A program made the translations under genes and the position numbers. 64,000 nt of DNA, from sequence record OP310984.1; one strand, 5' to 3'. A model generated the notes under the pieces. It was not told the origin of the DNA. It saw nothing but the letters and a program-made list of their open reading frames with translations, and made no database searches. Below are positions 1 through 58,659 of the stretch, in pieces (the first letter of the stretch is position 1; each line of letters begins with the position of its first letter).

Positions 1-123
1 ACCATTCCCGCAAGTAATATATCTCTTAGTGAATACGGCTACCGATCTGGCTTCACGTTCATCTCATTCGACTTGTGATAAACATTCCGGGTTACGTCGA
101 ATAATTTCACGAATATTAGACAT
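1..123 (-). pseudogene. 5' part of a small ORF interrupted by an in-frame TGA at codon 20; runs off the window
   Basis: Early-promoter motif at 155-177, SD GGGGA, ATG at 123. Reads MSNIREIIRRNPECLSQVE*DEREARSVAVFTKRYITCGNG; TGA at 64-66 and open afterwards. Confidence 0.5.
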
Positions 124-154
124 TGGGTATTCCCCTTATCACTATTGCATCTTA

Positions 155-177
155 GTGATATAAATCTGAAATTAAAT
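155..177 (-). promoter_or_regulatory. phiKZ-type early (virion RNAP) promoter
   Basis: Minus strand ATTTAATTTCAGATTTATATCAC matches the TATATTAC-type early motif repeated at 12 sites in the window. Confidence 0.6.
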
Positions 178-227
178 CCAGTGGAACTTTACATCCATGG
201 TTAGTCGCCGCCATAACAGGAAATAAA

Positions 228-254
228 GCCCCCTACTACATAAATAGTAGGGGT
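228..254. terminator. stem-loop terminator after RNAP subunit exon 2
   Basis: CCCCTACTA / TAGTAGGGG inverted repeat just past the stop at 265. Confidence 0.6.
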
Positions 255-264
255 AAGTTTATTA

Positions 265-483
265 TTACGACTTCAACCATTCTTCTAATGGCGGTAAATA
301 CTTCTCATGCGCCCAGTTAATAATTGTTTCTACAACAGGACCCTGTAATTCAAGGTTACCTGAGATTTCATGTGGTTCATCAATAGATAGAACCCATGTA
401 TGTGGAGCAATGCGTTCAGTTGCTTTGGTTAAATACACATCAGGCATTAACGTTAAATTCAATTGATCGCCGTCAAAATCCGC
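265..483 (-). CDS. non-virion RNA polymerase beta-prime N-terminal subunit, exon 2 (phiKZ gp56.1-like)
   Basis: Reading from 483 gives ADFDGDQLNLTLMPD..., which completes the catalytic NADFDGD motif with exon 1 (KAPN). Spliced product is 487 aa. Confidence 0.92.
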   Translation of the reverse strand, partial: ADFDGDQLNLTLMPDVYLTKATERIAPHTWVLSIDEPHEISGNLELQGPVVETIINWAHEKYLPPLEEWLKS

Positions 484-1872
484 CGTTATGTTCAGTATGG
501 GTCGTTAATCCATACCCGGTAGTATAATTACCACATGATAATTACCACCTGCTGCATGTCGCCATGCAGACCAGACTATATCTTCACCCTTCCTTTCGGA
601 GTAGGGTGTCTCCCATTTCGAGTCACTTGACTCTACATCCTATTTCTAGGACCGGCGCACCTGATACCGTAATAGTCGTTGAACCTTCTCCTATTCCTAA
701 ATGGAATGTTACGGAGCTTGGCTGCTGATTGTCCCTACCTAATCTTTTTCAAACCTTGGCTTTGTCTTTCGACTCGCAGTGGTAGATTAGTTTAACAGGA
801 TATCCCAGCAATTAGAGAGAACTCATCCCAATGATTACTCATTGGGGGAACTAGACTTGATTAACTTAATAAGGTATTTATCAAGCACCCCATTCTTTTC
901 AAAGATTGCTCTTCGAATAGTATTCGGATGCTTAATACCGACATCTCTTGCAAAGTGTGGAATACTTGGATACACTTTGGTAGTGTTCAAGATGGTGTCA
1001 GTTACTTCAATTGGAGTGCCTTTTCCATTACTAGGTTTTCCAAATGAGGCTTCAATTTCTTTCTGAGTATATTTAGGGAAATCTTCAGGATTAGCAGTAT
1101 ATGAGAATACCAGACCATCCATGATTTCCTTACTACCTCTAACTAGATGGTAATAGGCTTTATTACGTTTAGTACCTAGTGCAAGTTCCATTTCTGCTAA
1201 GTTATGAAACACATGTAATGTCTTAGTCTTATAGTCTAAAACATAAACTGTCTTGGTACTTTCACGATCAGCAATCTTAGTCTCACCGGTAATAAATTCA
1301 AATGTGAATCTATTTCTATACGGCTTAGTCTTATGGTCACGTATAATAACCCAAACCGTATTTTTATTAACTCCTAATACCCGAGCAAGTTCATTCATCG
1401 AGTAATAAGTAGTCTTTTCACCAGTGGTAACATCAGTTGCAATTACCCGTCTATTTTCTTTTCTTAATCCATTTTTGTAAGCATGCTCAATGTTTTCACC
1501 ACGAGTCATCCATTCCAAATTGGATGGTAAGTTATTATGTTTGTTGCCGTCTTTATGATTGACTTCATATGTTGGTCCAGGAGATGGACCATGGAATGCA
1601 GTACAAACTAGAATATGCGCTCCCTTACTTTTTGATGTCTTTTCATCATTTTTTGCACCTATATTGAGATATGTCCCAATTGATGTTTTAGTAAGGAAGA
1701 AATTACATATTCTATTTAACCGCTTATGACGAATCGTTCCTAAGTTACTAGCCTCTTAAGCTGAGTATCCAGGAATATCTCGCCATTCAATTTTAAATGA
1801 AGCCGGATCAAAGACGGACACTACTCCGTTTTGTTCCATTGTCTTTTACCTTATTTGGTTATTCAATTGTCC
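484..1872 (-). mobile_element. group I self-splicing intron (1389 nt) with endonuclease ORF in the P1 loop
   Basis: 5' splice site after U (AAT at 1875-1873), terminal G at 484. Core elements: P AATTGCTGGGATATCC (~798-813), Q AATCAGCAGCC (~720-730), R GTTCAACGACTA (673-684), S AAGATATAGTCT (573-584). Confidence 0.93.
835..1839 (-). pseudogene. NUMOD4-HNH homing endonuclease with a premature TAA at codon 28
   Basis: ATG 1839 with SD AAGGT; WRDIPGYSA*EASNLGTIR (NUMOD4-like); HILVCTAFHG...EVNHKDGNKHNN..NLEW (HNH); then repeated NUMOD1-like modules. TAA at 1756-1758. Would be 334 aa if intact. Confidence 0.85.
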
Positions 1873-3117
1873 ATTAGGCGCTTTAAGGCATAAAACTGAC
1901 ATGCTGATAGAATTATCATTAATGTCATCTTTTACTTTAGTAATAAAGAACTGCTGCGTAGATCCACGTTGAAGCGTTGGATTTCGGTGAAAAGTACAAC
2001 CCATCCCTTTATAAGGGGCTGCTTCTGCAATTAGCTCTTTAAATAGATCTGCAATGATTTGGTTATATTGAAGTACATTCTCATATACAAATGAGAATGC
2101 TTCACGAGTTGTCATGTTAAACTTTGCTTTTAGTTTATTGGTTAGATGATACTTTAATAATTGACAACCTACCCCCCAAGGGATATGTAGTTCATCATAA
2201 TCATGCGGGTCACTAATAGAAGTGATTACTGCACGTGCCGTAGCGTTGAGACGAGCACCAAACATGTGACGCCGAGCAAGACCAGGCTTTTGAGCAATTC
2301 GTGATTTTGCGTAGATCTCGTAGAACTGGCCATATAGTCTTAGTCCTCGCATAGTCCTATTCTGAGCTTTAATTGGACTAAGTGGTACAGATGATGCATC
2401 AATACTAGCGAAGGTTAAGGTAGCATCAATTGCTGCTTCAATTGGTTTATCTAAGTAAGTACCAGATGTGGTTGATTCTGCTACGAAACAGAGTTTAGAA
2501 GGAACTGGTAAATATTTAGGGAATAACTTATCTTTATTCTGAGCAACGAATTGAGCGAATTCGGATTTATTATTAGAGATAATATTTGCATCTAGTAGGA
2601 ATTGGAAGATCTCATTGAAATTATCAATGAAGTGATTTAATCCTCTTTCAAATCCTCGATGCAGTAGCCTATCTACTTTCCTGCGTGTTTCCTTAGAACC
2701 AATAGATTCTACATCGTATCGATAAGAAGTATCAGTTAGATATGCTAAGAAATCGAATTCTTTAGTTACTAGATATCCGGTTAGCATAATGATTAAACGT
2801 GGGTTAATTAGGCTACGTACATGTTTTGGTGTACGAACCCACATTGATGGTTCGATAGGACGGCTAGAAGTATTGACAACTGGAGTATTACAAATATCAC
2901 AGATTACTCCGAGTTTATGTGCGTCTTCGATTGCTCGACAATCACAGCTTACACTACTTTCAATTGCTTCTGAATCTTGGAAATGAGAATAGAAATGCCT
3001 ATCAAATTCTTCTTTCTCATCTGAGTTACTCGTATTGTAATCATTGGCATAAATTCGTTTACCCGTAAATTGATCATGAACTTCATTATGATCAACAACT
3101 TTGGCATAAAGACCCAT
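1873..3117 (-). CDS. non-virion RNA polymerase beta-prime N-terminal subunit, exon 1 (phiKZ gp55-like)
   Basis: Zn-binding CDC...CDIC, conserved beta-prime motifs KPGLARRHMFGARL and FHRNPTLQRGS; ends KAPN at the splice site. Confidence 0.92.
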
Positions 3118-3142
3118 ACCAAACTCCTATTTATCGATTAAC

Positions 3143-3511
3143 AAAAAAAGGAGATATAAGCGGCCCCCGAAGGAGCCGCTATATCAGTTTTTACAATGGA
3201 CCACCAACGGAGCCTGGCCCGATCCTAGCGTCATCTACAAAGCTTAACCTCCGCTCTTCTCTGTAGCATACCGGCACTAGTATCATTTACCATCCATTGT
3301 AGTTTTTGATCACACGTCACCTTTTGAGTAACTCCTTTCGGTTAAGTGATCTATCATCCTCGTGTAGTGATAGGTCGACCTAGACTAAGTCCACTAGTCG
3401 ATTACTTCACGGAACCTACTCCTAACCGTTATCACCGAAGTGAACCAGGGTCGCAGTATTAGAATCGGGATGTTACTTATTTAACATCCCTATCTACCGA
3501 GGTATTTCCTA
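3143..3511 (-). ncRNA. candidate structured RNA or long 3' UTR downstream of chimallin
   Basis: No ORF of 60 aa or more; at least 7 stems, including UUCG and GAAA tetraloops and a 9-bp long-range closing stem (3192-3200/3294-3302). Ends in a UUCG terminator. Confidence 0.5.
3155..3184 (-). terminator. intrinsic terminator ending the chimallin transcript
   Basis: GCGGCTCC-TTCG-GGGGCCGC followed by TTATATCTCCTTTTTTT on the minus strand. Confidence 0.75.
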
Positions 3512-5392
3512 TTAGTACCAGGTACCCGGTGCATTATAGGAAGGAGCGCCGTAAGTTTGACCCATGCTGCCAGCCATACCAACTTGTGCACTACCAGAAA
3601 CAGCCATGTTACCCATACCGGTGTAACCAGCGAAGCGCTGTTGACCGAAGTTGGTAATTAGGTTTTCCATGGTTACAGTTACACCAGCGGCTGCTGCTGC
3701 GGCATCCATTGCGGTGATGAATTTCGGGTTAAAGGTTAGACGACGAGCACGACCAGTATAGGTAACGTTACCTAGGTACATCTTGTCGAAGCCTTTACTG
3801 TTATTCATACGACGCACAATGTGGTCATTACCTACCTGAGTAGCATACCAGGTCTTCCACTCTTGGTCATTACCTTCAGACATGTTCATGGCACCTAGAA
3901 CGTCAAGATCACGACGGTCGCTTAGTTCGCCATGCTCATCAGTGTAGTGACCGAGGTCTACTTCATGATGGTTGTCAAAGATAATCGGACCAGCTTCAGC
4001 TAGGTTATAGAACTGACGGAAATCAGTGCCGTATAGGTTAGTTAGAGCTTGGAAGATCAGGCTAACTGCACGAGCTTGGTTTACGCCACCAGCTGCATCT
4101 AGGATGACTTGCTCAATAGCTGAGTTGTCGCCCATTGGATCGATATCGATCTGGAATGCAGGGTTCTGGTTAACCATCTTGTTCATTAGCATTACGAAGT
4201 TGCTGTCGTCTGCCATGAATGCTTCGGTGCGAGTTTCAATCGCTTTACCTAGCTCTGAGTAATAACCAAGTGCACCAATATCACGCATCTTACTAGTAGC
4301 GATCTTCGGCATTAGAGTACGAGCCCATGCCTGAGATGCAGTTGCACGATACGCGTTACCAAGCGCGAACAGCCACATTTCTAGAGTCCATGCTTGGATC
4401 CAGGATGCCTTACGAACGTCAGTAATAACGATGTAAGGAGTGAACTGCGGAGGTAGAACTGCACCAGGTAGAGTTACGCCAAACATGCCTTGTTGCTGGC
4501 CAGTGGTCGGAGTCCAATGTAGATCTACGAATAGACTAACTTGGTTTAGCTGGCTATCGGTATCATAGAACTCGTTCTCAGGTACGTTGGTTTTCTTACC
4601 ACGGCTAGTGGAGATGACCAGGTCAGAACGGATCGGATTACCACAGCTATCTTTAACCGGAATACCATTGTAGTCTAGATTGCAGGTAAGCTGTTCGTTT
4701 TCTGCTTTGATGTGGGTCGCAATAGAGAACGGAGTCTCATTGTTACGACGCGCAATAGCATCTTCACAGATATTAACGGATTCAACTAGTAGGTTCTTAA
4801 CAGCTAGTTCATCTTTGAAGTCGAAGTCAGCATACACTGCACGTGGACCGGCAGATAGTACTTCTAGACCAGGGATGTTGTAACGGTTCCGTAGGAACTC
4901 GCCGATCTTGCTCCAGTATTGAGCAGTGAATACATCACGCGGTAGTACCTTCTCTTCAATGATGTCATCAGTTAGACCATTGTTGATTTTGTGGGTACGG
5001 GGACGGATGCGAGTACCAGGTAGGTTATCGAGTACTAGAGTACGAACGAATGCCTTCATGGAACCATTGATATCTTTAGCTAGTTTAACAATGAGTAGAC
5101 CAGCCATACCAACTTGTTGCGCATCACGATCGAAACGATGGATATCGAAGTCATCAGGTAGGTCCTGATGGCGGATTGCTTCTTCTTTTACTTTAGTGAA
5201 TACTTGTAGGGCATCTGCTGAACGAGCATCAGAGCCATCTAGCCGACCAGAGCGACGCATTAGATGGTTAATGCCAGTAGTAGACCCAGGCGCGCCAGTA
5301 GGACGTTGAGCTTGACGCTGTGCAGTGGGTTGCGGAGCCGGAGCGGTAGCTTGAGTTTGAACGGTGCCGATTTCGTTTTCGTTAACAGCCAT
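3512..5392 (-). CDS. chmA: chimallin, major phage nucleus shell protein (phiKZ gp54-like)
   Basis: 626 aa with low-complexity N- and C-terminal tails, directly upstream of the nvRNAP beta-prime gene as in nucleus-forming phages; GC-richer composition than neighbours. Confidence 0.88.
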
Positions 5393-5464
5393 TTTAAATA
5401 CCTTTACGATTATGGTTTCTTGATCAAGAAGAACCTAAGTACTTAGTATACTAGATTCAATTTA

Positions 5465-5488
5465 GTAATATAAATCTCAAATTTTTTT
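5465..5488 (-). promoter_or_regulatory. early promoter of chmA
   Basis: Minus strand AAAAAAATTTGAGATTTATATTAC, a perfect TATATTAC motif. Confidence 0.75.
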
Positions 5489-5545
5489 CATTACAACATA
5501 GACGCTATAATCTGCTATCAGCAGATCGTAACGAACACTATGTTC

Positions 5546-5580
5546 ACTACATATTATTACAATCTGAGTATTATTTATTT
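5546..5580 (-). promoter_or_regulatory. second (middle-type) promoter of chmA; 35 bp identical to 61774-61808
   Basis: AAATAAATAATACTCAGATTGTAATAATATGTAGT, with the TAC-N15-ATGT architecture seen at 7 sites. Confidence 0.6.
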
Positions 5581-5703
5581 TTCATCTTACAATTTCCATA
5601 TCTTCTTTTTTGAGTTTATGGGTATAAAGTTTGAATCCAGAAACTAATTTACGTCAGTCCTGTATTAAATAATAACTATCAGTATTTTTATAAAATGCAG
5701 TTA

Positions 5704-6069
5704 TCATTTACTTCGCATATACTTACGAACTGTTCCAAAAAGAGAATGGTACAGTTTGTATAGTTTACTAACTGGATCAACTTTATTATTATCAGTTGTA
5801 TCAAATTTAGCAATAAATGGTGAATGTGCCGAAGCAGATGTTTCATTTACTTTAACTACACTACCAAATCGATATGCGACTAATACCTTTATTAATTCCT
5901 CATGGAGTTTAGTAGCAGTTGCTAATGGATTGGGATCATTAGGATCTATCTTAATCCTACGCTCGACATTGAAAAAGTTTACTACAATTTCTTTGCTAGT
6001 CATGTATACAGTAAGATCTTTGTTATTACCTAAATATAGTGGCGGATCTTCAACATTATTTTTAGCCAT
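5704..6069 (-). CDS. hypothetical protein (gp53-like position)
   Basis: 121-aa ORF preceded by an early-type motif at 6112-6135. Confidence 0.7.
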   Translation of the reverse strand: MAKNNVEDPPLYLGNNKDLTVYMTSKEIVVNFFNVERRIKIDPNDPNPLATATKLHEELIKVLVAYRFGSVVKVNETSASAHSPFIAKFDTTDNNKVDPVSKLYKLYHSLFGTVRKYMRSK

Positions 6070-6150
6070 TGTATATTCCTATTTGTAATTACTACTGTTG
6101 TTACCAAACTATGATATAGATCTCAATTAATTTTTAATCGGATAATAACC

Positions 6151-7242
6151 ATGTATAGTTTATTTAAGAATGCTCCGTCACGTAAATTGGGGCAGGTGGT
6201 TGATCCTAACATCCATTATATCCGACGAATCTACGCTGAGCAAATTAGGGACGTTAAAAGTTATTATAGACGGGCACCGAAGTATGTTGAATCTAAAAAC
6301 ATATTAGCACAAATGATTCGACATTTTAACGTAGAGTTACTAAGTGATGATGCTACTTTTATAAAGAACGTGGACGATCGTTCACGTGCTATTATTCGTT
6401 CATTTGGTATTACATCATCTTTAAATAAAGGTAAGGTTCATGTAGGTGGTGTTACACTTGGTCCTCAAACTGAAGAGGTTCTAGTATCCACATCAGAGAG
6501 CTTTGATCTAAAAGATCTAAATAAAACATGGTATAAACTTTCCCCTGTTACGTATCTGTATCATACACGTACTGATACTAATTTACCTATCATGAACAAT
6601 ACCACACAGGGTAGAGGCTATGGTGTAACTCTAGTAAATATACCAATGCTTCTTGTGATGTACCGTTACTGGTATCGATGGCAAGTTGAGAAGAATCCTG
6701 ATGAAGTAGAAGACACTTATAGGTTTATAGGATCATTTGTATTGTCAAATATGGTTGACTCTTATTTAGATATTTCTTTCTTTAATAGGTTAGCAAGGAA
6801 TGCTTTAGATATTAAAAATCCAACATTCCCTATACCGCATCCATTTTACATCACTGATATGAATCCACGTATTGATAAACTATGTACAACTATCAATAGA
6901 GAATCCATATTAAAAGGTGTAGACATGGAAGGTTTATCATGGATAACACCAGCTATCGTACAATCTAATTTGTTCGATATGATGCGGCTCCCACGAGAAC
7001 CTATTAACAGGAATAATGAATGGGCTTATGTATTGGCTCGCACACCCTTCATTAAGTATCTTGTAGGGCAGCTTTTAAAGAATACTGGTTATGATCAATC
7101 TTCTGTTAACACTGTATTAATTGATCTTATAGAAGCATCTAATGATCAAGCATTTAAGCAACAAGCAAATAGTGAGTTTGTAAAAGCTCAACAGGCACAA
7201 GTTGATTGGATGATAGATGCACTTAAAAGAAAAGAAATGTGA
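6151..7242 (+). CDS. conserved phiKZ-like protein (gp52-like position)
   Basis: 363-aa ORF followed by a hairpin at 7243-7277. Confidence 0.75.
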   Translation: MYSLFKNAPSRKLGQVVDPNIHYIRRIYAEQIRDVKSYYRRAPKYVESKNILAQMIRHFNVELLSDDATFIKNVDDRSRAIIRSFGITSSLNKGKVHVGGVTLGPQTEEVLVSTSESFDLKDLNKTWYKLSPVTYLYHTRTDTNLPIMNNTTQGRGYGVTLVNIPMLLVMYRYWYRWQVEKNPDEVEDTYRFIGSFVLSNMVDSYLDISFFNRLARNALDIKNPTFPIPHPFYITDMNPRIDKLCTTINRESILKGVDMEGLSWITPAIVQSNLFDMMRLPREPINRNNEWAYVLARTPFIKYLVGQLLKNTGYDQSSVNTVLIDLIEASNDQAFKQQANSEFVKAQQAQVDWMIDALKRKEM

Positions 7243-7277
7243 CATAAACCCCCTCCTAAATTGGAGGGGGTTATATG
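7243..7277. terminator. bidirectional hairpin between convergent genes
   Basis: CATAAACCCCCTCC-TAAATT-GGAGGGGGTTATATG. Confidence 0.7.
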
Positions 7278-7285
7278 CCGTTTTA

Positions 7286-8008
7286 TTAGAAATTACCTTT
7301 CTTCATTTTAGAAAGTAATTTTCTACGTTCAGCTCGGTTAATTCCTGGGATAGCTGGTAATAGCATTTTATTACTAAACTTACCTGGCTTGCGGTCATGA
7401 TTTAGTAATTGATCAACTACAGCTTGGTCACTGCTTTTAACTCCATTATCCATTTCATCTAATGGGTCCATAATAGCTTTAGCAGTCAATCTTAGATGAG
7501 TAACTAGTTCATCAAATGAACTATCGGTATTAATAAGTTGTTTATCAACACCTTCTTTAAGAGCTTGTTTAATAGTTACGTCTTTTACCAGGATATTATC
7601 ACATTCCCAAAGAGTTGTATGATGGGTATTTAACATTAATTCAAGTGAGACATTATTGTAATCGTTGTCAGCACTTGAGTGCCAATTGAATTCATCAATA
7701 TAGTCATTTAGACTCATTAACTTTGGTGGTTCGTTACTAGAGGTAATTAAACCAATTGGTTGAACATCATCTAGTGAACTTTTATCACTAGTAATTGCAG
7801 TTGTTTCAGTAGTAACATCAACTTCTTTTAATTCGTTGGTATAAGTTACATATACTAATTCTTCACTACCGTCATCCAAAAGAACATAGGCTGTTGCTTT
7901 GGTGGAATCATCAGGTGCTAATCCATGGATCCTAATACGATTATCATTTACTAATTTACTATAATCATTCCAGGTAATTACGCGGACTTCTTTATTCTCT
8001 TTCATCAT
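7286..8008 (-). CDS. hypothetical protein
   Basis: 240-aa ORF with a basic C-terminal NRAERRKLLSKMKK tail. Confidence 0.75.
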   Translation of the reverse strand: MMKENKEVRVITWNDYSKLVNDNRIRIHGLAPDDSTKATAYVLLDDGSEELVYVTYTNELKEVDVTTETTAITSDKSSLDDVQPIGLITSSNEPPKLMSLNDYIDEFNWHSSADNDYNNVSLELMLNTHHTTLWECDNILVKDVTIKQALKEGVDKQLINTDSSFDELVTHLRLTAKAIMDPLDEMDNGVKSSDQAVVDQLLNHDRKPGKFSNKMLLPAIPGINRAERRKLLSKMKKGNF

Positions 8009-8168
8009 TAGTTACCTCTTTTAATTTGTCTTTAATATAACTTCGGATAAATGCTCGTTTTTCTTCACGAGTTAACCCAGGTGGAGCGGTTGGTAATGTG
8101 ATAGTACCACTGTTAATTGCCTTCTTCATCCGATCTAAGTCAAAATTAAATTCGGTATGATTTGTCAT
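7992..8168 (-). CDS. small hypothetical phage protein (58 aa)
   Basis: Likely start ATG 8168 (MTNHTEFNFDLDRMKKA...), behind an early-like motif at 8205-8230. Confidence 0.6.
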   Translation of the reverse strand: MTNHTEFNFDLDRMKKAINSGTITLPTAPPGLTREEKRAFIRSYIKDKLKEVTNDERE

Positions 8169-8266
8169 TATATTGAACCATATTAAGTTAGTAATTGGCA
8201 ATCAGACTATATAAATCTTAATTATTTTTTAGTATATAAGCCTCCCACTAGGGGAGGCTATATTTC

Positions 8267-10462
8267 TTAATAGAAGTCAGAGATGAGTCGATCGTTATTT
8301 TTATCAATAAGGAAAATACCTAGGGACTCTAAGGTTAGATAGAATACACCCATAGTGTTTCCAATGATAGTTCTAACGTCAGCAACACGCGTAATAACTT
8401 CTGGAATACGACCAGTTTCTACTACTGTACTCGGGATATGGAAATCACCAATACTGGTTTTATTTTCTTCAGTAACCCATGCTTGAATACGAGCAGCTAA
8501 TTTCTTATCTTCGATACCATCAATCCATTCTTTGATCGCAGTTTTATTATTAAGAGTAACTGAGATCTTTACATGTGAATAAGGTGGATCACCAGCGTCA
8601 CCAAATGATGGAGCAAATACAGTCTTCCACACTAATCCCTTTTTATGGGTTGAGTTATCTTCAGATTTATAAGACTCAGGTCGTTTAGTTTGACCACTTG
8701 TCAGATACTCAGCTTTACCACTTCTAACAGACTCAATAATTTCTCTTTCGATATCACCAACTTCTTTTAGAATTGAAGCCAAGTCGATTTTCTCTTCAGT
8801 CTTTACAGTTTTAATGATATCTTCCATGAGTGTTTTAGCACGACTATTAATCTTCTTAGGTACTTTACTATCCCTTAGTCCTACACCCTTGATCTCCATT
8901 CGTGACTCATTAAACATTACCCCTTCTTGGGCATCCTGTGATGCAAAGTAATGTTTAGAACGAGTAGTTAAGGCCAGTACTGCGAAATAATATTCGTTCT
9001 TCATTGCAAATAGACGAAGCTTATCTTTAGATACACCCATATTAGCGGATTGAATCGCCAAGATATGCATAACTACTTCAGACACTAGAAACACTAGTGC
9101 GAATACTAGTCGCTTAGCTTCATTGCTAAAAGTTACTTTACCAAAGAATTCCTCAACCCACCATTGTAATGTAAACATAGTGGAGTCAGTATCTGAAATA
9201 ACAGCAGCTCGTCTATACACAGTTGGAAAAGCATGAATGCTTGATGGTACACATTTAGTCAAGAAGAAAGCTTCAATCAATAGACGATATTCATTAAGAG
9301 TTTCAGCGATATTTCGACCAGTGGCATAAACTTGGTTTAATGTATCTGGATCTGACTCTTTTAGTTTAGCTTTAGATCGACCTTTAACAGTATCAAAGCA
9401 AATAAAGCTAGCCAATAGATCCATATCACCATCATAAGTTGAATATTCTTCTTCAGTGATGATTTGTTCTTTTGTTCCAACCTGGCTTAATTTAATTAGA
9501 AAGCTCTTGATTAATTCTTTATTGTATTTATATAAGTGATATAGATCACCTACGTACATAACTGCTGCTCGTTCGACTGGTGTCATCCCAGTAGCTAGTT
9601 TTAAAATCTGCGCCGTGTAGTACTTATTTTGCCAATAGTGTTTAGTTGAATAAAGAACCATATCAACTACTTCTTCTGGCGTTGGGCAATGTAGATTAAA
9701 ATTAGTTACTGCTTTTTGAATTAACTCCATATCAGCTACATTAATAGTGTTTACTAAATTAGCTTTTGTGATTTCTGGAGTATAATAATGCCTATTACCC
9801 ATAATGAATTTTTCATTATTTGAGTTAGCATAAGAGGTACCAGTTCTACAGGTAGATGTTAAACTAGAGTGTGTGGACTTATAATAAAGAATAGTGGCAG
9901 CAGATACAGTACCGCCTGAATATGAGTTATTGTTAATTTTGAAGTTTTCTTGCTCGCCTTTACGTACTTGTGCAAGTTCTGTTTTAATTTGTGAATTCTC
10001 TTTATCGCCGGCCTGTAGGAAAGCAGCTGCTTCACGTTCAGCCTGCATCTGTTCACCTTTAACACGCTTACGGTTTTTCACACCTTCGGCAATATAGATG
10101 GAGTGCGTAGACTGTCTAACAGACTCTGGTAAATATGCGGTCATTGATGGAGATAATAATAGATTCTGTTTCTTAACACGGTTAAGAAAAGCCATAAATG
10201 AAACCGTCTTTAATTCCCTATCACCAAACTTATTTTTATCTAGAATAGTTGCTAATGGATTACGAAGTGCATATTCGCCATTTTGACGTAATTGTTCTTT
10301 AACAAATTCTTTACATTCTTCTAAACTAATATTTAATTCATCTTTTGTCATTAATTGAAGATATTTGGCATTATCATCAAGACATGCATTAATGATATCA
10401 ATATCACGATGGTAATCATTGACATCTTTTAAAAACGGATTTGGTTGGGCAAATGCGGTCAT
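8267..10462 (-). CDS. family B DNA polymerase, split catalytic subunit (phiKZ gp50-like)
   Basis: 731 aa with PolB motifs KINNNSYSG (motif B-like) and ISDTDST (motif C). phiKZ-like phages encode PolB as two genes. Confidence 0.85.
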   Translation of the reverse strand: MTAFAQPNPFLKDVNDYHRDIDIINACLDDNAKYLQLMTKDELNISLEECKEFVKEQLRQNGEYALRNPLATILDKNKFGDRELKTVSFMAFLNRVKKQNLLLSPSMTAYLPESVRQSTHSIYIAEGVKNRKRVKGEQMQAEREAAAFLQAGDKENSQIKTELAQVRKGEQENFKINNNSYSGGTVSAATILYYKSTHSSLTSTCRTGTSYANSNNEKFIMGNRHYYTPEITKANLVNTINVADMELIQKAVTNFNLHCPTPEEVVDMVLYSTKHYWQNKYYTAQILKLATGMTPVERAAVMYVGDLYHLYKYNKELIKSFLIKLSQVGTKEQIITEEEYSTYDGDMDLLASFICFDTVKGRSKAKLKESDPDTLNQVYATGRNIAETLNEYRLLIEAFFLTKCVPSSIHAFPTVYRRAAVISDTDSTMFTLQWWVEEFFGKVTFSNEAKRLVFALVFLVSEVVMHILAIQSANMGVSKDKLRLFAMKNEYYFAVLALTTRSKHYFASQDAQEGVMFNESRMEIKGVGLRDSKVPKKINSRAKTLMEDIIKTVKTEEKIDLASILKEVGDIEREIIESVRSGKAEYLTSGQTKRPESYKSEDNSTHKKGLVWKTVFAPSFGDAGDPPYSHVKISVTLNNKTAIKEWIDGIEDKKLAARIQAWVTEENKTSIGDFHIPSTVVETGRIPEVITRVADVRTIIGNTMGVFYLTLESLGIFLIDKNNDRLISDFY

Positions 10463-10662
10463 TTCACATATCTCTCAGTATACTTATTTTTAATTATAGT
10501 GAATGATTTCTCTCTCTTTAACTAAAAAAGAAAAGGAAAGAATGGGTACCCTATACGGGCACCCTAAATTGAGAGGTAGCACATCAACTTACATTCACAT
10601 TAGATGATGTAAGCAAGTAAAAATAATACAACATAAAAGGAGCCATAATGGCTCCTTTATAG

Positions 10663-11088
<426 letters not shown>

Positions 11089-11113
11089 CTAAAATAGTTG
11101 GTTACATAGGGTA

Positions 11114-11497
11114 TTACTCATCTAGTAATACAACTACACCAAACAGACCTTTTGTATCCATTGGCACTGTAATTAATACATGTCCATTTGGATATTTTTC
11201 TTTAAAGCTATTGATAAAGTCGGTACAATATTCAATAACATATCCTTTAGTAGAATAATTCTCTAACTCAATATCTTCGTCAGGATCATCAAATGAGTCA
11301 TGTCCATACATCAGCATATGGATATATATGTCATTATTAAGCGTATCCATATAACTTAACTTACGTGATTCTTCAAATAAATCAAGTGGTGTTGGACAAT
11401 CTGGATATATCATTCGTTTTGTATATTCACGAAGCAAATGTTGCGAATATATTTCTGACTCTTTAGATTTAAATACGATAAATACTCGTTTTTCCAT
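11114..11497 (-). CDS. hypothetical protein
   Basis: 127-aa ORF in a co-oriented array. Confidence 0.7.
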   Translation of the reverse strand: MEKRVFIVFKSKESEIYSQHLLREYTKRMIYPDCPTPLDLFEESRKLSYMDTLNNDIYIHMLMYGHDSFDDPDEDIELENYSTKGYVIEYCTDFINSFKEKYPNGHVLITVPMDTKGLFGVVVLLDE

Positions 11498-11569
11498 ATC
11501 GGTTCCTAGTAGGAAGCCTATGTGAACCGATAGGCTTTCCTATTTACGTCAATTGTTAATATGTGTCAC

Positions 11570-12106
11570 TTAATCCACATCATTGTAGCAGTCCATACCA
11601 AAGTCTTCACCTTCTAGAATATAACCTTGATTATGTTGATCAACTGCTATTGATTGGATTCTTTCTACACCATATCCATTCTGATAAAGATACGCTATTT
11701 CAGATTGTAGTTTACTAGCCAGTGTTTTACACACAGCTGCAAACCACATATTAAGAATACTCAATGCATATTTATCTTGCATAATCACAGGCGCTACTGA
11801 TGGAAAGTATTCTTGTAAATAATAGTCAACCCCTATAATTGGTTGAGTAGGCTGTTGTGCTAGAAATTCAATATATGCATTAATCGCCTGATACCATAAC
11901 TGTTCTATAGATTGGTGTTCAGTATATGGGTAAGGAGTATTGTAAGACTTATTGACAACTACATCAGCCATTTTATTAACAATGGGCCAGATATCACTGA
12001 TGTTAATAACTACGAAACTCGTCATTCCTTGTTGGCCTGGAGTTATGTTATTAGCATCATTTATCCGCTGCATTTCTTGTTGTCTATAAAGAAGTGGATG
12101 CATCAT
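11570..12106 (-). CDS. hypothetical protein
   Basis: 178-aa ORF; start overlaps the upstream stop (ATGA). Confidence 0.7.
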   Translation of the reverse strand: MMHPLLYRQQEMQRINDANNITPGQQGMTSFVVINISDIWPIVNKMADVVVNKSYNTPYPYTEHQSIEQLWYQAINAYIEFLAQQPTQPIIGVDYYLQEYFPSVAPVIMQDKYALSILNMWFAAVCKTLASKLQSEIAYLYQNGYGVERIQSIAVDQHNQGYILEGEDFGMDCYNDVD

Positions 12107-12537
12107 GTTTGAGACCTCATAACTAATTTAGTTACCATCTTATATTTATCTACTTCTATACATTTAAGACTAGTAATAAGATTACCTGCTTGAATAACTT
12201 GTTTTTGGATTATCTCTAAGAAATCAGTTCCAAATAAATCCAATACCCTTTCGATAATCTCAGCAGATCTTAAGTGCCAATTGATAGTATTAGGATTTCC
12301 CTGATGATCAAATACCATCATGCTCATCGGTCTATCTGGTTCTATATAGGTATCGCTTAAGTAATCTTCTAACCATTGCTCTAAAAAGGTAGGCCAATCT
12401 AATCTCTGCCAGTGGTTAAAGTATTCTACATATGCTGCTAGAAGTCTATTGATACACCACAGTACAAAGTCAGTCGGTTCATCTACACCTAGCTCTTCCG
12501 TAAAAGAACGCGGTTTCAAAATTAGCAACAATTGCAT
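12103..12537 (-). CDS. hypothetical protein
   Basis: 144-aa ORF overlapping the 3' end of the upstream gene. Confidence 0.7.
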   Translation of the reverse strand: MQLLLILKPRSFTEELGVDEPTDFVLWCINRLLAAYVEYFNHWQRLDWPTFLEQWLEDYLSDTYIEPDRPMSMMVFDHQGNPNTINWHLRSAEIIERVLDLFGTDFLEIIQKQVIQAGNLITSLKCIEVDKYKMVTKLVMRSQT

Positions 12538-12937
12538 ATTGACTCCACTCTTTACCAGTGACTATAGTTAATAGAACAACTTTGTTATCTATTACACTAA
12601 TGAACTTATAGTCTATTAAATTCTTCGGTGTTCTATGTAGTAATTGGATTCCAGTTGTATAGAACAAATTAATGAACTCATCCCAATCTGGACCATTTCC
12701 TAGTTGTATTGATATATCCACAAAAGGAATAACCGTATTATCCTGTTGTAATTTAGACATCATCTTAACAACCCATTGAGTTAATAAGACGATGACTGTA
12801 GCTTCATCTTTATTTGTTAGGTAAGTAAATTTCTTTATCAATGTGATTAATTGTGGGAATACCACTTCGATTGGCAATACATATACCAGACGTTGTACTT
12901 CCTCCGATGTACAATCCATCTCGTGCTTCTGTTTCAT
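12479..12937 (-). CDS. hypothetical protein
   Basis: Likely start ATG 12937 (MKQKHEMDC) with SD AAGGAA; the ORF track extends it to 12994. Confidence 0.65.
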   Translation of the reverse strand: MKQKHEMDCTSEEVQRLVYVLPIEVVFPQLITLIKKFTYLTNKDEATVIVLLTQWVVKMMSKLQQDNTVIPFVDISIQLGNGPDWDEFINLFYTTGIQLLHRTPKNLIDYKFISVIDNKVVLLTIVTGKEWSQYAIVANFETAFFYGRARCR

Positions 12938-13262
12938 ACCACAGTTCCTTAGTATTTGTTGGAATGAGGTGCATGATCTGCTCAGCACCCTCATCGAGAA
13001 GTTCTATTAGTTTATGCATGAAATGAATGTCTTTAGCATATTCATAGAACATTTCTTCTTTAACGACCATTTGCATAAGCTTCTGTTCTGCCAATGCAAC
13101 AAGCAAATGCATTGCTTCGATATAACTAATATCTAAAAAGTCCAATACAAATCTTAGATAGTTATCATCTTTAATAAGTTTACTTTTAGTCGCTCTTAGT
13201 AAAAAACGAGGTTGTGGTGTGGGTAATGGTGACGTATAGATCTTCTGGTTTCTCAGTATCAT
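12810..13262 (-). CDS. hypothetical protein
   Basis: 150-aa ORF overlapping both neighbours. Confidence 0.65.
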   Translation of the reverse strand: MILRNQKIYTSPLPTPQPRFLLRATKSKLIKDDNYLRFVLDFLDISYIEAMHLLVALAEQKLMQMVVKEEMFYEYAKDIHFMHKLIELLDEGAEQIMHLIPTNTKELWYETEARDGLYIGGSTTSGICIANRSGIPTINHIDKEIYLPNK

Positions 13263-13575
13263 AAATAACCCTATTTAACTGGATGTTACCAGCTGATGGT
13301 AGAACTACCCGGTTAGAACAATTATACAGATAAGTTGTTAAATTAATATCACAAATATCCCTATAACCCAGCATCTGATTAATTAGTTCTATGACATCAT
13401 TAGATGTGCTACCCGATGCCCTCTCAGACGCTGCTGCCAATACAATTGTTAATGCATATTCTGCACCAATACTATTTTTTATAGATTTCCAAATATCAGA
13501 ATGTTGATCTTGTACAAAAGATCTTACTTCCATTCTGATACACATTGATGTGTCTTTATCATTAGATATGTTCAT
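13186..13575 (-). CDS. hypothetical protein
   Basis: 129-aa ORF. Confidence 0.65.
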   Translation of the reverse strand: MNISNDKDTSMCIRMEVRSFVQDQHSDIWKSIKNSIGAEYALTIVLAAASERASGSTSNDVIELINQMLGYRDICDINLTTYLYNCSNRVVLPSAGNIQLNRVIYDTEKPEDLYVTITHTTTSFFTKSD

Positions 13576-13624
13576 TATAAAAACCTTATAATCGGTATAA
13601 AGCCCCCCATAAGGAGGGCTTTAT

Positions 13625-14698
13625 TTAGTATAGATTATTTTCTAAAATGTATCGCTCAGCTTGCGCTCGCTGATCATCAGGTAAATAATCACCACGTTGA
13701 TATTCAAATACTAATTTCTCAATAGGATAAGTTGCATTCTTATTCTTGTATACAGAAATTACATAGCTATGATACTCTAGTTCATACTTAACGTCATGCT
13801 CAATTCTGGTTGAAAAATATGCCATGTTAATAGAACTAACTAGAGGGCTAATATATTTCTCTTCAAATAGTAATAAATTATCAAGTCCTAAACTTGCAAA
13901 GAAATCATGGTTAACCTTAGGTATTAGATAAGATACTTTAATATTACTATATTGTTTAACAATTACACCAATAAGTAATGCAGTTAACTGTTCTTGAATA
14001 TATTCTACTGCGATGTTATATGCATGGTTAGTGGTGATGTGGTCTTTATTTAAAGTATAGCTACCACCATTAGCAAGAGATAGCTGAGTTTTACGCCTAG
14101 ATTCGTAGATACTATAACCTAATGTTTGTAAATTAATTCTGTCAAAGCCATGGAAGAATGTACGGAGAAATTCACTAAATAAATAGTTTAATGGGTTCAG
14201 TAGGTTAAGTGATACCACTGCATGATCATCACCATTATCAATCCCATGGACACGATCATATTCCGCGATACGATAATCTTTGCCACTGATTAAAGTTATA
14301 ACTGAACCAGCTTTAACTACATCCCATTGGATCCATGTACCGCTATCGATATATTTAGCTACTTGTTTATAGATATCTAGATAGATAGTTTCTAGATAAG
14401 GTAGTTTCATTAGATTTTCTACCCAAGCAACTTTATTACTATCTACGTCAGTTACAGCACAATTAAAAATAGCTGCTGCCATCTTAAGATTGGTGTACTG
14501 GTCTTTGGCTGTTTTATATGAAACTAAACTCTCTACTATATTTTCAACCATTAGATGTAAAAACTGTTGAGCCACATCTTTACTCAATTTCACCCCAATC
14601 GCTTCATCAATTGAAGCTGAAGCTGTAAGCTGACCTAGTAAATCGTATATTGCTTTTTCTTGGTGGCGCGTATCAAGTACAATGAGCTTATTCGACAT
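13625..14698 (-). CDS. hypothetical protein, possibly two related domains
   Basis: 357-aa ORF followed by a hairpin at 13596-13624. Confidence 0.75.
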   Translation of the reverse strand: MSNKLIVLDTRHQEKAIYDLLGQLTASASIDEAIGVKLSKDVAQQFLHLMVENIVESLVSYKTAKDQYTNLKMAAAIFNCAVTDVDSNKVAWVENLMKLPYLETIYLDIYKQVAKYIDSGTWIQWDVVKAGSVITLISGKDYRIAEYDRVHGIDNGDDHAVVSLNLLNPLNYLFSEFLRTFFHGFDRINLQTLGYSIYESRRKTQLSLANGGSYTLNKDHITTNHAYNIAVEYIQEQLTALLIGVIVKQYSNIKVSYLIPKVNHDFFASLGLDNLLLFEEKYISPLVSSINMAYFSTRIEHDVKYELEYHSYVISVYKNKNATYPIEKLVFEYQRGDYLPDDQRAQAERYILENNLY

Positions 14699-14711
14699 TA
14701 TATTTCTCCAA

Positions 14712-15140
14712 TTAATTTTTTGGAATAGCGATCCAAACTGTGTTCTTTAACCGATAAAATATTACAAACTTACCTGCATTTACTCTAGGTATAATTTTTA
14801 ATATATCCCAAAGATCAGATGCGGCCTCATGATTATCATGAAACCATTGGATTTCTTGAGGGGTGTTATTTATTGGATTATATCCAGTAGTATACATGAA
14901 TTCAAAAGAGTCAATAGAATATTTAAAGAAGTCATCAATTAAGCTGTCCTCTACTGATTTAAATATATGCTCTAATGTACCATAGTCATCTGGATGTATT
15001 CCAAAGCTTTGGCACCTAATTGCTAAACGAGCATTTATTAGCTCTTTTGGCGATCTTGGTACTAACTTGGCTATCACCCTCGTTACATCTATTACATACA
15101 GGTCAGCTATTTGGGGAGTAGTCACAGTACAATCTCTCAT
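14712..15140 (-). CDS. hypothetical protein
   Basis: 142-aa ORF behind an early motif at 15156-15180. Confidence 0.7.
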   Translation of the reverse strand: MRDCTVTTPQIADLYVIDVTRVIAKLVPRSPKELINARLAIRCQSFGIHPDDYGTLEHIFKSVEDSLIDDFFKYSIDSFEFMYTTGYNPINNTPQEIQWFHDNHEAASDLWDILKIIPRVNAGKFVIFYRLKNTVWIAIPKN

Positions 15141-15267
15141 TAAATGTTCAGGAACATGATATAGATCTAAAAATATTTTTAGTCAAATCTGTTCGTGGTA
15201 AGCCGATGTATATTATACCTTAGTTGGGTATTATCTCCATCGAAAAAACGCGTACAGCGCATTATAG

Positions 15268-16077
<810 letters not shown>

Positions 16078-16095
16078 AAAAAAATAAAAAAAAGA

Positions 16096-16127
16096 CATAA
16101 TGCCCTCCCATTGCGGGAGGGCTTATG
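16096..16127. terminator. bidirectional hairpin of the CATAA-CCCTCCC family
   Basis: CATAATGCCCTCCCATTGCGGGAGGGCTTATG, a near-exact inverted copy of 25795-25826. Confidence 0.7.
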
Positions 16128-16185
16128 CCATTAAGATAATATCTAAATAACACTATATTTAAAAACATACTGGTATAACCCATCA

Positions 16186-16413
16186 TCAATTAATACTGTT
16201 GAGAATCTTTTTGATGAGATCACCAGGTGCAATACCAATACCTGAACAATACCGTCTAAAGTTATTACACGGTTGACATGCTTTCTTTTCAACGATATTT
16301 AATTCAAAGCAAATATTGCCACGTGAATCTAGAATGGATATAAATGCTTTGTTACCTGTTACGCGATATGTCTTACCGAATACAACAGTTGTTTTATATG
16401 CAAGGCTATTCAT
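16186..16413 (-). CDS. small hypothetical protein
   Basis: Likely start ATG 16413 (MNSLAYK) with SD AAAGGA; 75 aa. Confidence 0.55.
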   Translation of the reverse strand: MNSLAYKTTVVFGKTYRVTGNKAFISILDSRGNICFELNIVEKKACQPCNNFRRYCSGIGIAPGDLIKKILNSIN

Positions 16414-16480
16414 GATTATTCCTTTAACATGGATTATTATCATGTTTGTAATATAGCCTTTAAATGTATTTAAATATTTA

Positions 16481-16768
16481 TTAAACCCCATAGCGATGAG
16501 CTATATATGTTTTTAATACCTCATATGCCTTATCAGTTGCCATGGAACTATTGACAAAATCAGAATGATCAATCTTAATAATCTTACCGAATGAATCATA
16601 ATCGATAGTTGTAACTGCTATTCGATCACTATCACGGATCAATAGTTTATTTTTATTTAAAACAAAAATATTCCATTTCTCGCCATCGGCTAAAATAACA
16701 TCCTCATCTTTAAGATTAAGACGAACAAACTGTTTTACATAAATACTTAACTGAGCAACTGTTGACAT
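16481..16768 (-). CDS. hypothetical protein
   Basis: 95-aa ORF. Confidence 0.6.
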   Translation of the reverse strand: MSTVAQLSIYVKQFVRLNLKDEDVILADGEKWNIFVLNKNKLLIRDSDRIAVTTIDYDSFGKIIKIDHSDFVNSSMATDKAYEVLKTYIAHRYGV

Positions 16769-17079
16769 AATGATTTCTCGATATCTGTTAATGAAATAAT
16801 CATATCTTGGACATTGATGGTAATAACATTTTTATAAGTTAAATAAGTTGGATATGAACCCATAAATGTAATAGTCCCACAGATATGATTTTTATATCTA
16901 ATATCAACACATCCGTCATATCTCCAGATAAAATCAAATGATCCTTTAGTGTGGTGTTCAAGTGAAAGAATAGAACCACTAACTAATTTAGGATATTGTT
17001 CAAATTCAGACATTACATAATCTGCCAGTTCCTTAACCTCAGGATAATCAATCAATAATAGCATATACGTAAATCTCAA
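16747..17079 (-). CDS. hypothetical protein
   Basis: 110-aa ORF overlapping the upstream stop. Confidence 0.6.
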   Translation of the reverse strand: MRFTYMLLLIDYPEVKELADYVMSEFEQYPKLVSGSILSLEHHTKGSFDFIWRYDGCVDIRYKNHICGTITFMGSYPTYLTYKNVITINVQDMIISLTDIEKSLCQQLLS

Positions 17080-17549
17080 TTAGTTAATATAACACCCCAT
17101 CCAGGGTGGACTCTTTCGAAAAATGGTAATGTATTATTTCGTATACTGTCTGCATCAATATTTGGAATGTGGATGGTACAACAGTGGGGGTTACTGTCAA
17201 TCTTGAAATAGAAATTATCTTTTAAATCTTCAACCTTGGATGTTTGTAATGGATATAAAATACCATTCCCCCAAACATACCAACGTCTATACAGCTTATC
17301 GTTTAACCGCTTCTCAATAACCGAATGCGATTTGAAACGAGGAACTCGCAAACGCATCCCGTTTACTTCAGCCCATTTGTCTACCCGATCATAGCTAATA
17401 ATTCCATCCTTAACCATTACAAAGATAAATCCCTCAACTATGTTGGGGAGACGAACTACGTGTTTCAGAACCATAGTAAACGGAGATAACGTCAGATCAA
17501 GTTCAGCTGCCATTTGCTCGTCGAGCTTTTTAGCAGTGTTCTTTGCCAT
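17076..17549 (-). CDS. hypothetical protein
   Basis: 157-aa ORF with SD AGGAG. Confidence 0.7.
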   Translation of the reverse strand: MAKNTAKKLDEQMAAELDLTLSPFTMVLKHVVRLPNIVEGFIFVMVKDGIISYDRVDKWAEVNGMRLRVPRFKSHSVIEKRLNDKLYRRWYVWGNGILYPLQTSKVEDLKDNFYFKIDSNPHCCTIHIPNIDADSIRNNTLPFFERVHPGWGVILTN

Positions 17550-17588
17550 CGGTTATCTCCTAATATACAGATTATTAATTATCGCTAG

Positions 17589-18071
17589 TTATTTAATATC
17601 TGCAAAATTCTGATTTACTTTACCCATAAAAATACCATCGGCTCTATCGTCATAATAAAGCTTCCCTGCTTTAGCATTACATAAAACTCCATAAATGTGA
17701 CCATTGTAACCATCAAAATTAAATAAAGATGGATTATGCGGTACATGAATGAATCCCATTTTATCGCACAGAAACTTAGCTACAGCAGCCGATCGGCTAA
17801 TACCTGCCTCACAGTGTACGAATAGGTGTTGACCCTTACCAAGAGCTTCACAGAAGGAAATAATACGTTGTGCATGCCGATGATCAAATAGATCATAAGA
17901 AGAATCAACATAATCCTCAATGTCATCAACATTGATACGTAAATAATTAAGATGTTTTGCTGAATAAAGTGGGACTCTACCTTTCTCCAGTAGACAGATC
18001 ATATTTCTAGGGGAATAAAATGATTCAGCTACATGTAAAGGTACATAGGTAACGGTATTTACTGGTTTCAT
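17589..18071 (-). CDS. CX5R (tyrosine/dual-specificity) phosphatase-family protein
   Basis: LFVHCEAGISRSAAVA active-site loop, with an upstream acidic DDIED loop. Confidence 0.8.
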   Translation of the reverse strand: MKPVNTVTYVPLHVAESFYSPRNMICLLEKGRVPLYSAKHLNYLRINVDDIEDYVDSSYDLFDHRHAQRIISFCEALGKGQHLFVHCEAGISRSAAVAKFLCDKMGFIHVPHNPSLFNFDGYNGHIYGVLCNAKAGKLYYDDRADGIFMGKVNQNFADIK

Positions 18072-56953: not shown

Positions 56954-57038
56954 GCCCGAATGGTGAAATTGGTAAACACAGAAGACTTAAAATCTTCCGG
57001 CTACGGTCTTGTCGGTTCGAATCCGACTTCGGGCACCA
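56954..57038 (+). tRNA. tRNA-Leu (anticodon TAA)
   Basis: Cloverleaf with long variable arm, loop CTTAAAA, TTCGAAT T-loop, encoded CCA. Confidence 0.95.
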
Positions 57039-57047
57039 ATTTAAATA

Positions 57048-57123
57048 CGGAGTGTAGCGCAGTTGGTAGCGCGCCTGCTTTGGGAGCAGGATGTCGGGAG
57101 TTCGAGTCTCCCCACTCCGACCA
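57048..57123 (+). tRNA. tRNA-Pro (anticodon TGG)
   Basis: CCTGC-TTTGGGA-GCAGG anticodon arm, encoded CCA. Confidence 0.95.
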
Positions 57124-57144
57124 TTTTAATAATAGGTAAATAGG

Positions 57145-57438
57145 ATGGATAATAAATGGATATCATGGGAACATCAAATTATAGGAACAGCTCTTTACGC
57201 TATTCTTAGTGACCCTGAATTAACTAATATTCAATTAGCTCAAGGCTTACACTATCTAACAGAAGCAAAGTCTTCTGTATTACATGTTTGTAATAACCAT
57301 ATTACATTCACTGTAACCTATCCACATGGCACATTTAGAACCAATGTAATTAGAGAGTGCCCTGCTAGTGATACAAATACATTCAAATGGTCAGGTGTAT
57401 TAGTCCGTCAAAAAGATGGAACATTCTTACCAGAATAA
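57145..57438 (+). CDS. hypothetical protein
   Basis: 97 aa, SD AGGA. Confidence 0.65.
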   Translation: MDNKWISWEHQIIGTALYAILSDPELTNIQLAQGLHYLTEAKSSVLHVCNNHITFTVTYPHGTFRTNVIRECPASDTNTFKWSGVLVRQKDGTFLPE

Positions 57439-57445
57439 ATAAAAA

Positions 57446-57522
57446 GGGCCTATAGCTCAGTTGGTTAGAGCAGGCGACTCATAATCGCTTGGTCGCAGGT
57501 TCAAGTCCTGCTGGGCCCACCA
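57446..57522 (+). tRNA. tRNA with CAT anticodon, most likely Ile2 (lysidine type) rather than Met
   Basis: Arm GGCGA-CTCATAA-TCGCT and overall sequence closely resemble enterobacterial ileX as I recall it; encoded CCA. Confidence 0.85.
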
Positions 57523-57574
57523 TATACTAGCCTCCCACTTGGGGGAGGTTTTATACTGTCTCATTGAGGAAAAC

Positions 57575-57796
57575 ATGAATACAGTAATAATGTTGGTATT
57601 ATCTATCAAAGTTGGATTATTTGGTTTCATTTCGACTAATGAAAGTAATATCCTATTTGAAAATAGGGAACAGTGTATTTCTCATCTGGATATTCTGGAA
57701 CATAAATACAAGTCTCTTGAAGTTATTCGAAATGAGAATACTCTAAAGATAACCGAAAGAGATAACCATTCTATTTATATTTTTAAATGTCTCTAG
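57575..57796 (+). CDS. small hypothetical protein with a hydrophobic N-terminus
   Basis: Likely start ATG 57575 (MNTVIMLVLS) after SD GAGGA. Confidence 0.6.
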   Translation: MNTVIMLVLSIKVGLFGFISTNESNILFENREQCISHLDILEHKYKSLEVIRNENTLKITERDNHSIYIFKCL

Positions 57797-57804
57797 GAAA
57801 ATAC

Positions 57805-58092: not shown

Positions 58093-58094
58093 AT

Positions 58095-58442: not shown

Positions 58443-58494
58443 TAAAATATTACTGGTTATGTAATACTATGTAGGAAGTCATGTCCATACGTTT

Positions 58495-58571: not shown

Positions 58572-58577
58572 TTTAAT

Positions 58578-58653
<76 letters not shown>

Positions 58654-58659
58654 TATTCT

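Follow-up and report, generated by a model that had tools for sequence, protein, structure and literature searches.

A nonsense codon in the intron-encoded homing endonuclease gene of a phiKZ-like phage: a probable, very recent loss-of-function allele

The DNA studied here (the window) is a stretch of 64,000 nucleotides from sequence record OP310984.1, and all coordinates are those of the window unless stated otherwise. Over positions 400–1950, 2000–26000 and 30000–54000, the window shows 100% identity with the Phikzvirus Pseudomonas phage Koomba boorn-mokiny kep-wari Wadjak 2, hereafter Wadjak 2. The minus strand carries the gene for the β' subunit of the non-virion RNA polymerase (nvRNAP), which is split by a group I intron containing a homing endonuclease frame of the phiKZ gp56 type. 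The features of this locus are as follows:

1873–3117, minus strand: exon 1, nvRNAP β' N-terminal subunit gene (phiKZ gp55 type), ending in ...LCLKAPN
484–1872, minus strand: group I intron of 1389 nt, delimited by the junction of intron-less homologues and by the contiguous positions 416/417 of phrog_2987
265–483, minus strand: exon 2 (phiKZ gp56.1 type), starting with ADFDGDQLN (the RNAP β' catalytic motif), stop codon included
552–872, minus strand: catalytic core of the group I ribozyme (Rfam RF00028, Intron_gpI), inside the intron limits
835–1839, minus strand: gp56-type homing endonuclease frame of 334 codons, broken at codon 28, with its terminal TAA at 837–835
1756–1758, minus strand: nonsense codon TAA (codon 28), TAT (Tyr) in relatives
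1720–1788, minus strand: NUMOD4 motif (Pfam PF07463, on the intact PA7 protein), residues 18–40, split by the stop
1492–1626, minus strand: HNH_3 nuclease motif (Pfam PF13392, 52.9 bits), residues 72–116
838–1491, minus strand: C-terminal DNA-binding part, three NUMOD1 helix-turn-helix repeats (Pfam NUMOD1)
1507–1518, minus strand: first canonical in-frame restarts, TTG 1518 and ATG 1509 (codons 108 and 111)

The ribozyme core matches the full RF00028 model (positions 1–253) at 85.3 bits, against a gathering score of 50 (E = 1.4e-21), and its sequence is the same as that of PA7, a phage in which the endonuclease gene is intact. At the 5' splice site, the last exon base is a T (U), at position 1873, and the last base of the intron is a G, at position 484. 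The open reading frame extending from 3117 to 1846 on the minus strand (423 codons) ends shortly past ...LCLKAPN. When the two exons were matched to the PHROG profiles separately, as unjoined pieces, exon 1 corresponded to positions 1–416 and exon 2 to positions 417–477 of phrog_2987 (‘RNA polymerase beta subunit’, 478 positions). The genes of phiHQ and 201phi2-1 have no intron and read unbroken through the junction as ...MSVLCLKAPNADFDGDQLN... (KAPN|ADFDGD); removal of the intron from the window gives the same continuity of frame, the KAPN end and the ADFDGD start matching those of the intron-less homologues. The intron is inserted immediately before the ADFDGD active-site motif of the nvRNAP β' gene. 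In phiKZ, the equivalent place is occupied by PHIKZ055 (RNA polymerase beta subunit), PHIKZ056 (HNH endonuclease, 1005 nt) and PHIKZ056.1. The nvRNAP β' subunit is a spliced gp55/gp56.1 fusion according to a recent preprint; splicing of the gp55/gp56.1 intron was not seen in an earlier long-read transcriptome of phiKZ (PMC10914365). Neither the intron nor its endonuclease is new: both date back to the phiKZ genome paper, and gp56, gp72 and gp179 were predicted as intron endonucleases in that first analysis (as noted in PMC10914365). Downstream of exon 2, the spacer to the gp57 homologue is about 390 nt long in the window and in the Wadjak 2 and PA7 types, versus about 50 nt in phiKZ, which has a different terminator hairpin there; this intergenic region is a variable module.

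The gp56-type frame begins at ATG 1839, ends at TAA 837–835 and contains a single internal stop, TAA 1758–1756. The 306 codons past this stop remain open and match HNH_3 (52.9 bits, cut-off 24.8) and NUMOD1 (97.6 bits, three stretches), and such a long, domain-bearing open stretch indicates that the frame is not a chance ORF. The whole frame matches the HNH endonuclease family phrog_59 (E = 3e-46), and the 227-aa ORF matches NUMOD1 at 101 bits in three stretches, with weak matches to HTH_17 and HTH_36 as well. NUMOD4 is found on the intact PA7 protein at 24.9 bits (cut-off 23.4), and the Pfam scan gave no NUMOD4 match in either of the window fragments flanking the stop. Codon 28 lies within the NUMOD4 motif of PA7 and is TAT (Tyr) in all 11 of the relatives with a homing endonuclease gene that were read at this position; the TAA is, thus, at the NUMOD4 tyrosine, where the original prediction had placed it.

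Alignment to I-HmuI (PDB 1U3E) pairs VNHKDGNKHNN...NLEWMT of the gp56 type with VDHKDGNKDNN...NLRWVT of that enzyme and identifies residue 95 (codon 1557–1555), opposite the histidine of the I-HmuI DHKDG, as the catalytic histidine. The earlier proposal, that a nonsense codon ahead of the HNH site has inactivated the endonuclease, agrees with these positions, the stop being at codon 28 and the catalytic histidine at residue 95. The HNH_3 domain and this histidine are present in the DNA frame only: the TAA at codon 28 interrupts the frame between the start codon and the nuclease and DNA-binding domains. To judge from its sequence, the window copy is a pseudogene of the I-HmuI-like HNH homing endonuclease family, rather than a working member.

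The reality of the stop was assessed with Logan contigs of four sequencing runs (three studies), aligned on window positions 400–2400 (2001 letters). The window base at position 1756 recurs in the contigs of three runs, X1 and X3 from study P1 and X4 from study P3, with word depths in the thousands for X3 and X4 and a shallow depth, about 5, for X1, possibly the source sample. Position 1756 carries the other base in run X2 (study P2), resulting in TAT, and exon 1 has five further differences there. A 61-nt probe with codon 28 at its centre matches only Wadjak 2 (Australia) and ANB1 (USA) at 100% in the phage collection, eleven further records having exactly one difference. A check for TAT or TAC in the raw data thus leaves the stop standing for this lineage, with TAA in the contigs of X1, X3 and X4. 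There is practically no chance that the TAA is a sequencing or assembly artefact in a phage that truly has TAT. Only one base differs from near-identical records, as would be expected of an error, but this base recurs in contigs assembled independently from three runs of two studies, two of them deep and one shallow; no alternative contig is present at 1756 in the TAA runs, the fourth run shows a clean TAT, and the TAA is common to two separately deposited genomes (Wadjak 2 and ANB1). Sequencing error is ruled out by the contigs of these four runs in three studies and by the two independent GenBank records.

The closest TAT alleles indicate the age of the lesion. PA7, PaSz-1_45_270k and pPA-N1803-4At.2 keep TAT and differ from the window by one base in the 1008-nt gene, at the lesion; they are otherwise identical to the window within the gene. 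Position 1756 is the sole difference between PA7 and the window over positions 1–2859, whereas the two differ by about 0.6% over a longer stretch (80 alignment positions over 13.9 kb; BLAST identity 99.43%). The window, Wadjak 2 and ANB1 have no substitutions among them within the gene, and ANB1 has two mismatches to the window from position 1 to 18035 and is divergent beyond. The TAA allele therefore lies on a shared recent tract within otherwise mosaic genomes, and the lesion is a single, very recent T-to-A transversion, now found on two continents. Spread of the allele through its own homing was considered and is not needed, because the common tract of about 18 kb points to common descent and ordinary recombination. 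Among the TAA carriers there are zero substitutions from which selection on the part past the stop could be measured. The presence of the allele in two mosaic backgrounds and on two continents implies that it is at least not strongly deleterious, and its persistence fits neutrality, though a retained function would be compatible with it too.

The gp56-type gene is found in several states across the genus. It is full-length and intact in 11 introns with a homing endonuclease gene (those of phiKZ, MKR2, PA02, PA7, PaSz-1, N1803-4At.2, KEN51, 124.01, FBPa36, KTN4 and NK1), and pairwise dN/dS values between intact copies within sequence subtypes are 0.03–0.09, indicating that the intact protein is under purifying selection. 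KEN49 has an independent nonsense mutation (GAA>TAA at codon 18); its dN/dS values against intact relatives, 0.03–0.06, cover the branches both before and after its stop. Past position ~1684 of its locus (L015), the KEN49 sequence has nothing in common with that of the window over the 3' part of the intron and over exon 2, only 89% of the query being aligned, and another insertion or rearrangement may be present there. HUST_1 has a +1 A insertion at codons 4–5, in a short A run, where a sequencing error is possible. In Churi, Wadjak 1, T2P and SL2, 891–893 nt of the gene interior are absent, with the endonuclease ATG, the first 49–51 nt (16–17 codons) and the last 64 nt retained, and at least 17 records among the matches listed show this short-intron pattern. 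These ORF-less introns might be regarded as the ancestral state, but retention of the ATG, of 16–17 codons and of the last 64 nt makes deletion the simpler origin. They (Churi, Wadjak 1, T2P, SL2 and others) share the intron, its site and its ribozyme core with the window; about 891–893 nt of the endonuclease gene have gone from them, whereas the window has a point lesion only, corresponding to an earlier stage. In a phiKZ transposon screen (TnSeq), orf55 was essential and orf56–57 were non-essential (PMC12676376). Taken together, these states portray the gp56-type gene as selfish and dispensable, functional in its intact copies and lost repeatedly.

Comparison with phiKZ gp56 (PHIKZ056) shows the same gene in the same intron and at the same insertion site, with 334 codons as in the window copy. 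The two differ at 44 of 1008 nt and at nine amino-acid positions including the stop codon (dN/dS 0.076), and codon 28 is TAT in phiKZ, whose frame is intact, but TAA in the window. The gp56 type is built like I-HmuI, with NUMOD4 as an N-terminal sheet, a nickase core of the HNH type and NUMOD1 repeats that bind DNA. I-HmuI, a nicking HNH homing endonuclease of Bacillus phage SPO1, belongs to the same architecture class and has a conserved HNH core, which is the only part that aligns by sequence (E = 1.1e-5, residues 47–99 of the fragment). It too is intron-encoded in a phage polymerase gene, but it has a different host gene and target site and is active, whereas the window copy is truncated. 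A more distant likeness is found in the Bacillus jumbo phage AR9 (KU878088, 225741–226878), in which the exon 1 homologue is directly followed, within the RNAP β' gene, by an annotated homing endonuclease of the HNH type with 33.7% identity to the gp56 type; the intron may be similarly placed in this very distant jumbo phage.

The ‘weaponised’ intron endonuclease gp210 of PhiPA3 is likewise a homing enzyme of the HNH type. PhiPA3 is a Pseudomonas jumbo phage that forms a nucleus, and the group I intron encoding gp210 interrupts one of its RNA polymerase genes at a motif rich in aspartate. The gene in question is that of the virion RNAP (the homologue of phiKZ gp178) and the intron is a different one, whereas the gp56 type is a paralogous system in the nvRNAP β' gene. 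PhiPA3 gp210 nicks the phiKZ gp178 virion-RNAP gene, with a 3.7-fold competitive benefit to PhiPA3 (Birkholz et al., 2024, PMC11620839), and corresponds to gp179 in phiKZ (PMC11620839, PMC12676376). Orthology between gp210 and the gp56 type is refuted by the difference in host gene, and the gp56 type has its best PhiPA3 match elsewhere, inside a split helicase gene, with 31.6% identity over 46% of the length. The original prediction had cited interference with co-infecting phages by an intron endonuclease of a related jumbo phage; the competitive effect is established for gp210 (PMC11620839), but this enzyme is not an orthologue and belongs to a different intron and gene. The precedent indicates that such enzymes can matter, and a role of gp56 in competition would be an analogy. 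The TAA allele itself, truncated as it is, could not be expected to reduce the fitness of a co-infecting phage with an empty site. The PhiPA3 stretch that gives the best match (NC_028999, 117561–118016; L024:2501–2956) is an unannotated NUMOD4/HNH-like translation between the pieces of a split DnaB-like helicase gene. It adjoins an annotated gp72-like endonuclease, and may be an unannotated or decayed homing endonuclease.

With high probability, the window allele reflects a very recent loss of function in a homing endonuclease gene that is selfish and dispensable. The lesion, its position relative to the catalytic residue and the unchanged ribozyme are direct observations, as is dispensability in phiKZ. 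One T-to-A transversion converted Tyr28 from TAT to TAA. Ribosomes starting at ATG 1839 would then release a 27-residue peptide and, as translation from this codon ends at codon 28, no protein with the catalytic His95 would be produced. Splicing is expected to continue, since the polymerase gene split by the intron is essential, and with an unchanged ribozyme the gp55/gp56.1 subunit would still be made. Only the endonuclease gene would, thus, be dead, the ribozyme being spared. A polar effect of the stop on exon 2 is unlikely, because in these phages transcription occurs inside the protein nucleus and translation outside it. The intron of this lineage would have lost homing by its own enzyme, the intron-less alleles of co-infecting phages would no longer be cut, and the intron would drift towards the ORF-less state already present in many relatives. 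Degeneration of this kind is a phase of the homing-endonuclease life cycle in the Goddard–Burt model.

Translation could resume downstream from the stop, and the DNA-binding part could have been retained for a use of its own. Past the stop, TTG 1518 (codon 108) is the first in-frame ATG, GTG or TTG, and ATG 1509 (codon 111) comes next. TTG 1518 had been described as lying past the HNH core; it does follow His95, but it falls within the C-terminal end of the HNH_3 match (residues 72–116). A restart at either codon would yield a nuclease-free remnant, a NUMOD1-repeat protein of 224–227 aa binding the homing site or intron DNA, which might be useful, for example, for shielding the site from related endonucleases, for repressing transcription or for helping the intron. 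We consider such a remnant unlikely. The C-terminal frame is intact, with NUMOD1 at 101 bits, but the internal ATG is already present in intact alleles, so nothing new would be made, and with zero substitutions since the stop, no selection signal is measurable. Gene callers chose a 675-nt ORF, annotated from ATG 1509 in the GenBank records of Wadjak 2, ANB1 and HUST_1, yet no good Shine-Dalgarno sequence was found upstream of TTG 1518 or ATG 1509, and the stop is about 240 nt upstream of these restarts, too distant for coupled re-initiation. I-TevI, which is also a DNA-binding autorepressor, provides a precedent for a non-catalytic role of a homing endonuclease, and the TAA allele persists in two mosaic backgrounds; against this, the region has been wholly lost in many relatives and orf56 of phiKZ is non-essential. 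It is very unlikely that the nuclease-dead allele is kept for its NUMOD1 part from ATG 1509, as a shield or regulator at the polymerase-gene homing site or intron DNA, against the endonucleases of co-infecting phikzviruses, for instance. If true, the NUMOD1 remnant would represent a homing endonuclease that has begun to be domesticated as a DNA-binding protein. Between the dead element and the DNA-binding remnant envisaged by the original prediction, the evidence favours the former, as a fresh null allele, and lends no support to the latter.

A nuclease with His95 might still be made, either by read-through of the TAA or from an in-frame ATT at codon 76 (window 1614), 5 nt upstream of which is a Shine-Dalgarno-like sequence, TAAGGGAG. 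A start at this ATT would keep the HNH_3 match (residues 72–116) almost whole, but ATT starts are rare, and the protein would lack the NUMOD4 N-terminal sheet, which contacts DNA in I-HmuI; an N-truncated protein with the HNH core is, thus, an unlikely product of this locus. With respect to read-through, TAA is the commonest stop in the window, terminating 19 of its 30 long ORFs, including the gp56-type gene itself, and a TAA with G as the next base terminates translation efficiently in bacteria. The tRNA scan, limited to the window, found no suppressor among its six tRNAs, and a suppressor tRNA or an altered code was rejected on the basis of this result and of the frequency of TAA. A retained nuclease is, on balance, highly improbable, although low-level read-through or internal initiation might occur in this phage. 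The six tRNA genes are located at 56954–61945 and correspond to Leu(taa), Pro(tgg), Met(cat), Asp(gtc) and two Asn(gtt).

Taken alone, the loss-of-function allele is of little importance: the pseudogene is fresh, but the homing endonuclease and its intron were both known already, and the decay of homing endonuclease genes is textbook knowledge. Literature searches found no description of the nonsense allele with TAA at codon 28. Its interest lies in the natural experiment that it provides, the alleles of Wadjak 2 and ANB1 (TAA) and those of PA7, PaSz-1 and N1803-4At.2 (TAT) being one base apart within the gene. The jumbo phage phiHQ, which also infects P. aeruginosa, has an intron-less junction with 51 of 60 flanking nucleotides identical and is a candidate empty target. 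Together with this target, the TAT/TAA pair offers a route to asking whether a second intron endonuclease of the phiKZ family acts in competition between phages in the manner of PhiPA3 gp210. The survey of gene states also displays the homing-endonuclease life cycle within one genus, with intact copies under purifying selection, three independent point lesions and many losses of the gene interior. For annotation, the 675-nt ‘HNH endonuclease’ coding sequence of Wadjak 2, ANB1 and HUST_1 deserves to be flagged as a pseudogene fragment.

Other introns are found close to this locus and elsewhere in these genomes. ANB1 differs from the window at 1980|1981 (minus strand, in exon 1, just before the PTLQRG codons) by an insertion of 1244 nt and is otherwise identical there. 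Rfam identifies the insertion (locus L020:3413–4656) as a second group I intron (87.5 bits), and its NUMOD4/HNH_3 endonuclease of 273 aa is intact. Given these otherwise identical flanks, position 1980|1981 of the window is the empty homing site of another intron that circulates in the genus. With two SNPs over 18 kb between ANB1 and the window, the second intron looks like a very recent gain by homing or a precise loss. KTN4, KEN49 and SL2 have the same upstream sequence, and Churi has an intron-like insert of a different sequence at this place. Short pieces of the ribozyme core of the window (551–588 and 799–819) also have matches at one other point of the same contig of run X2 (23.9 kb), about 14 kb away, which suggests that a related group I intron is present elsewhere in the genome, about 14 kb from this one.
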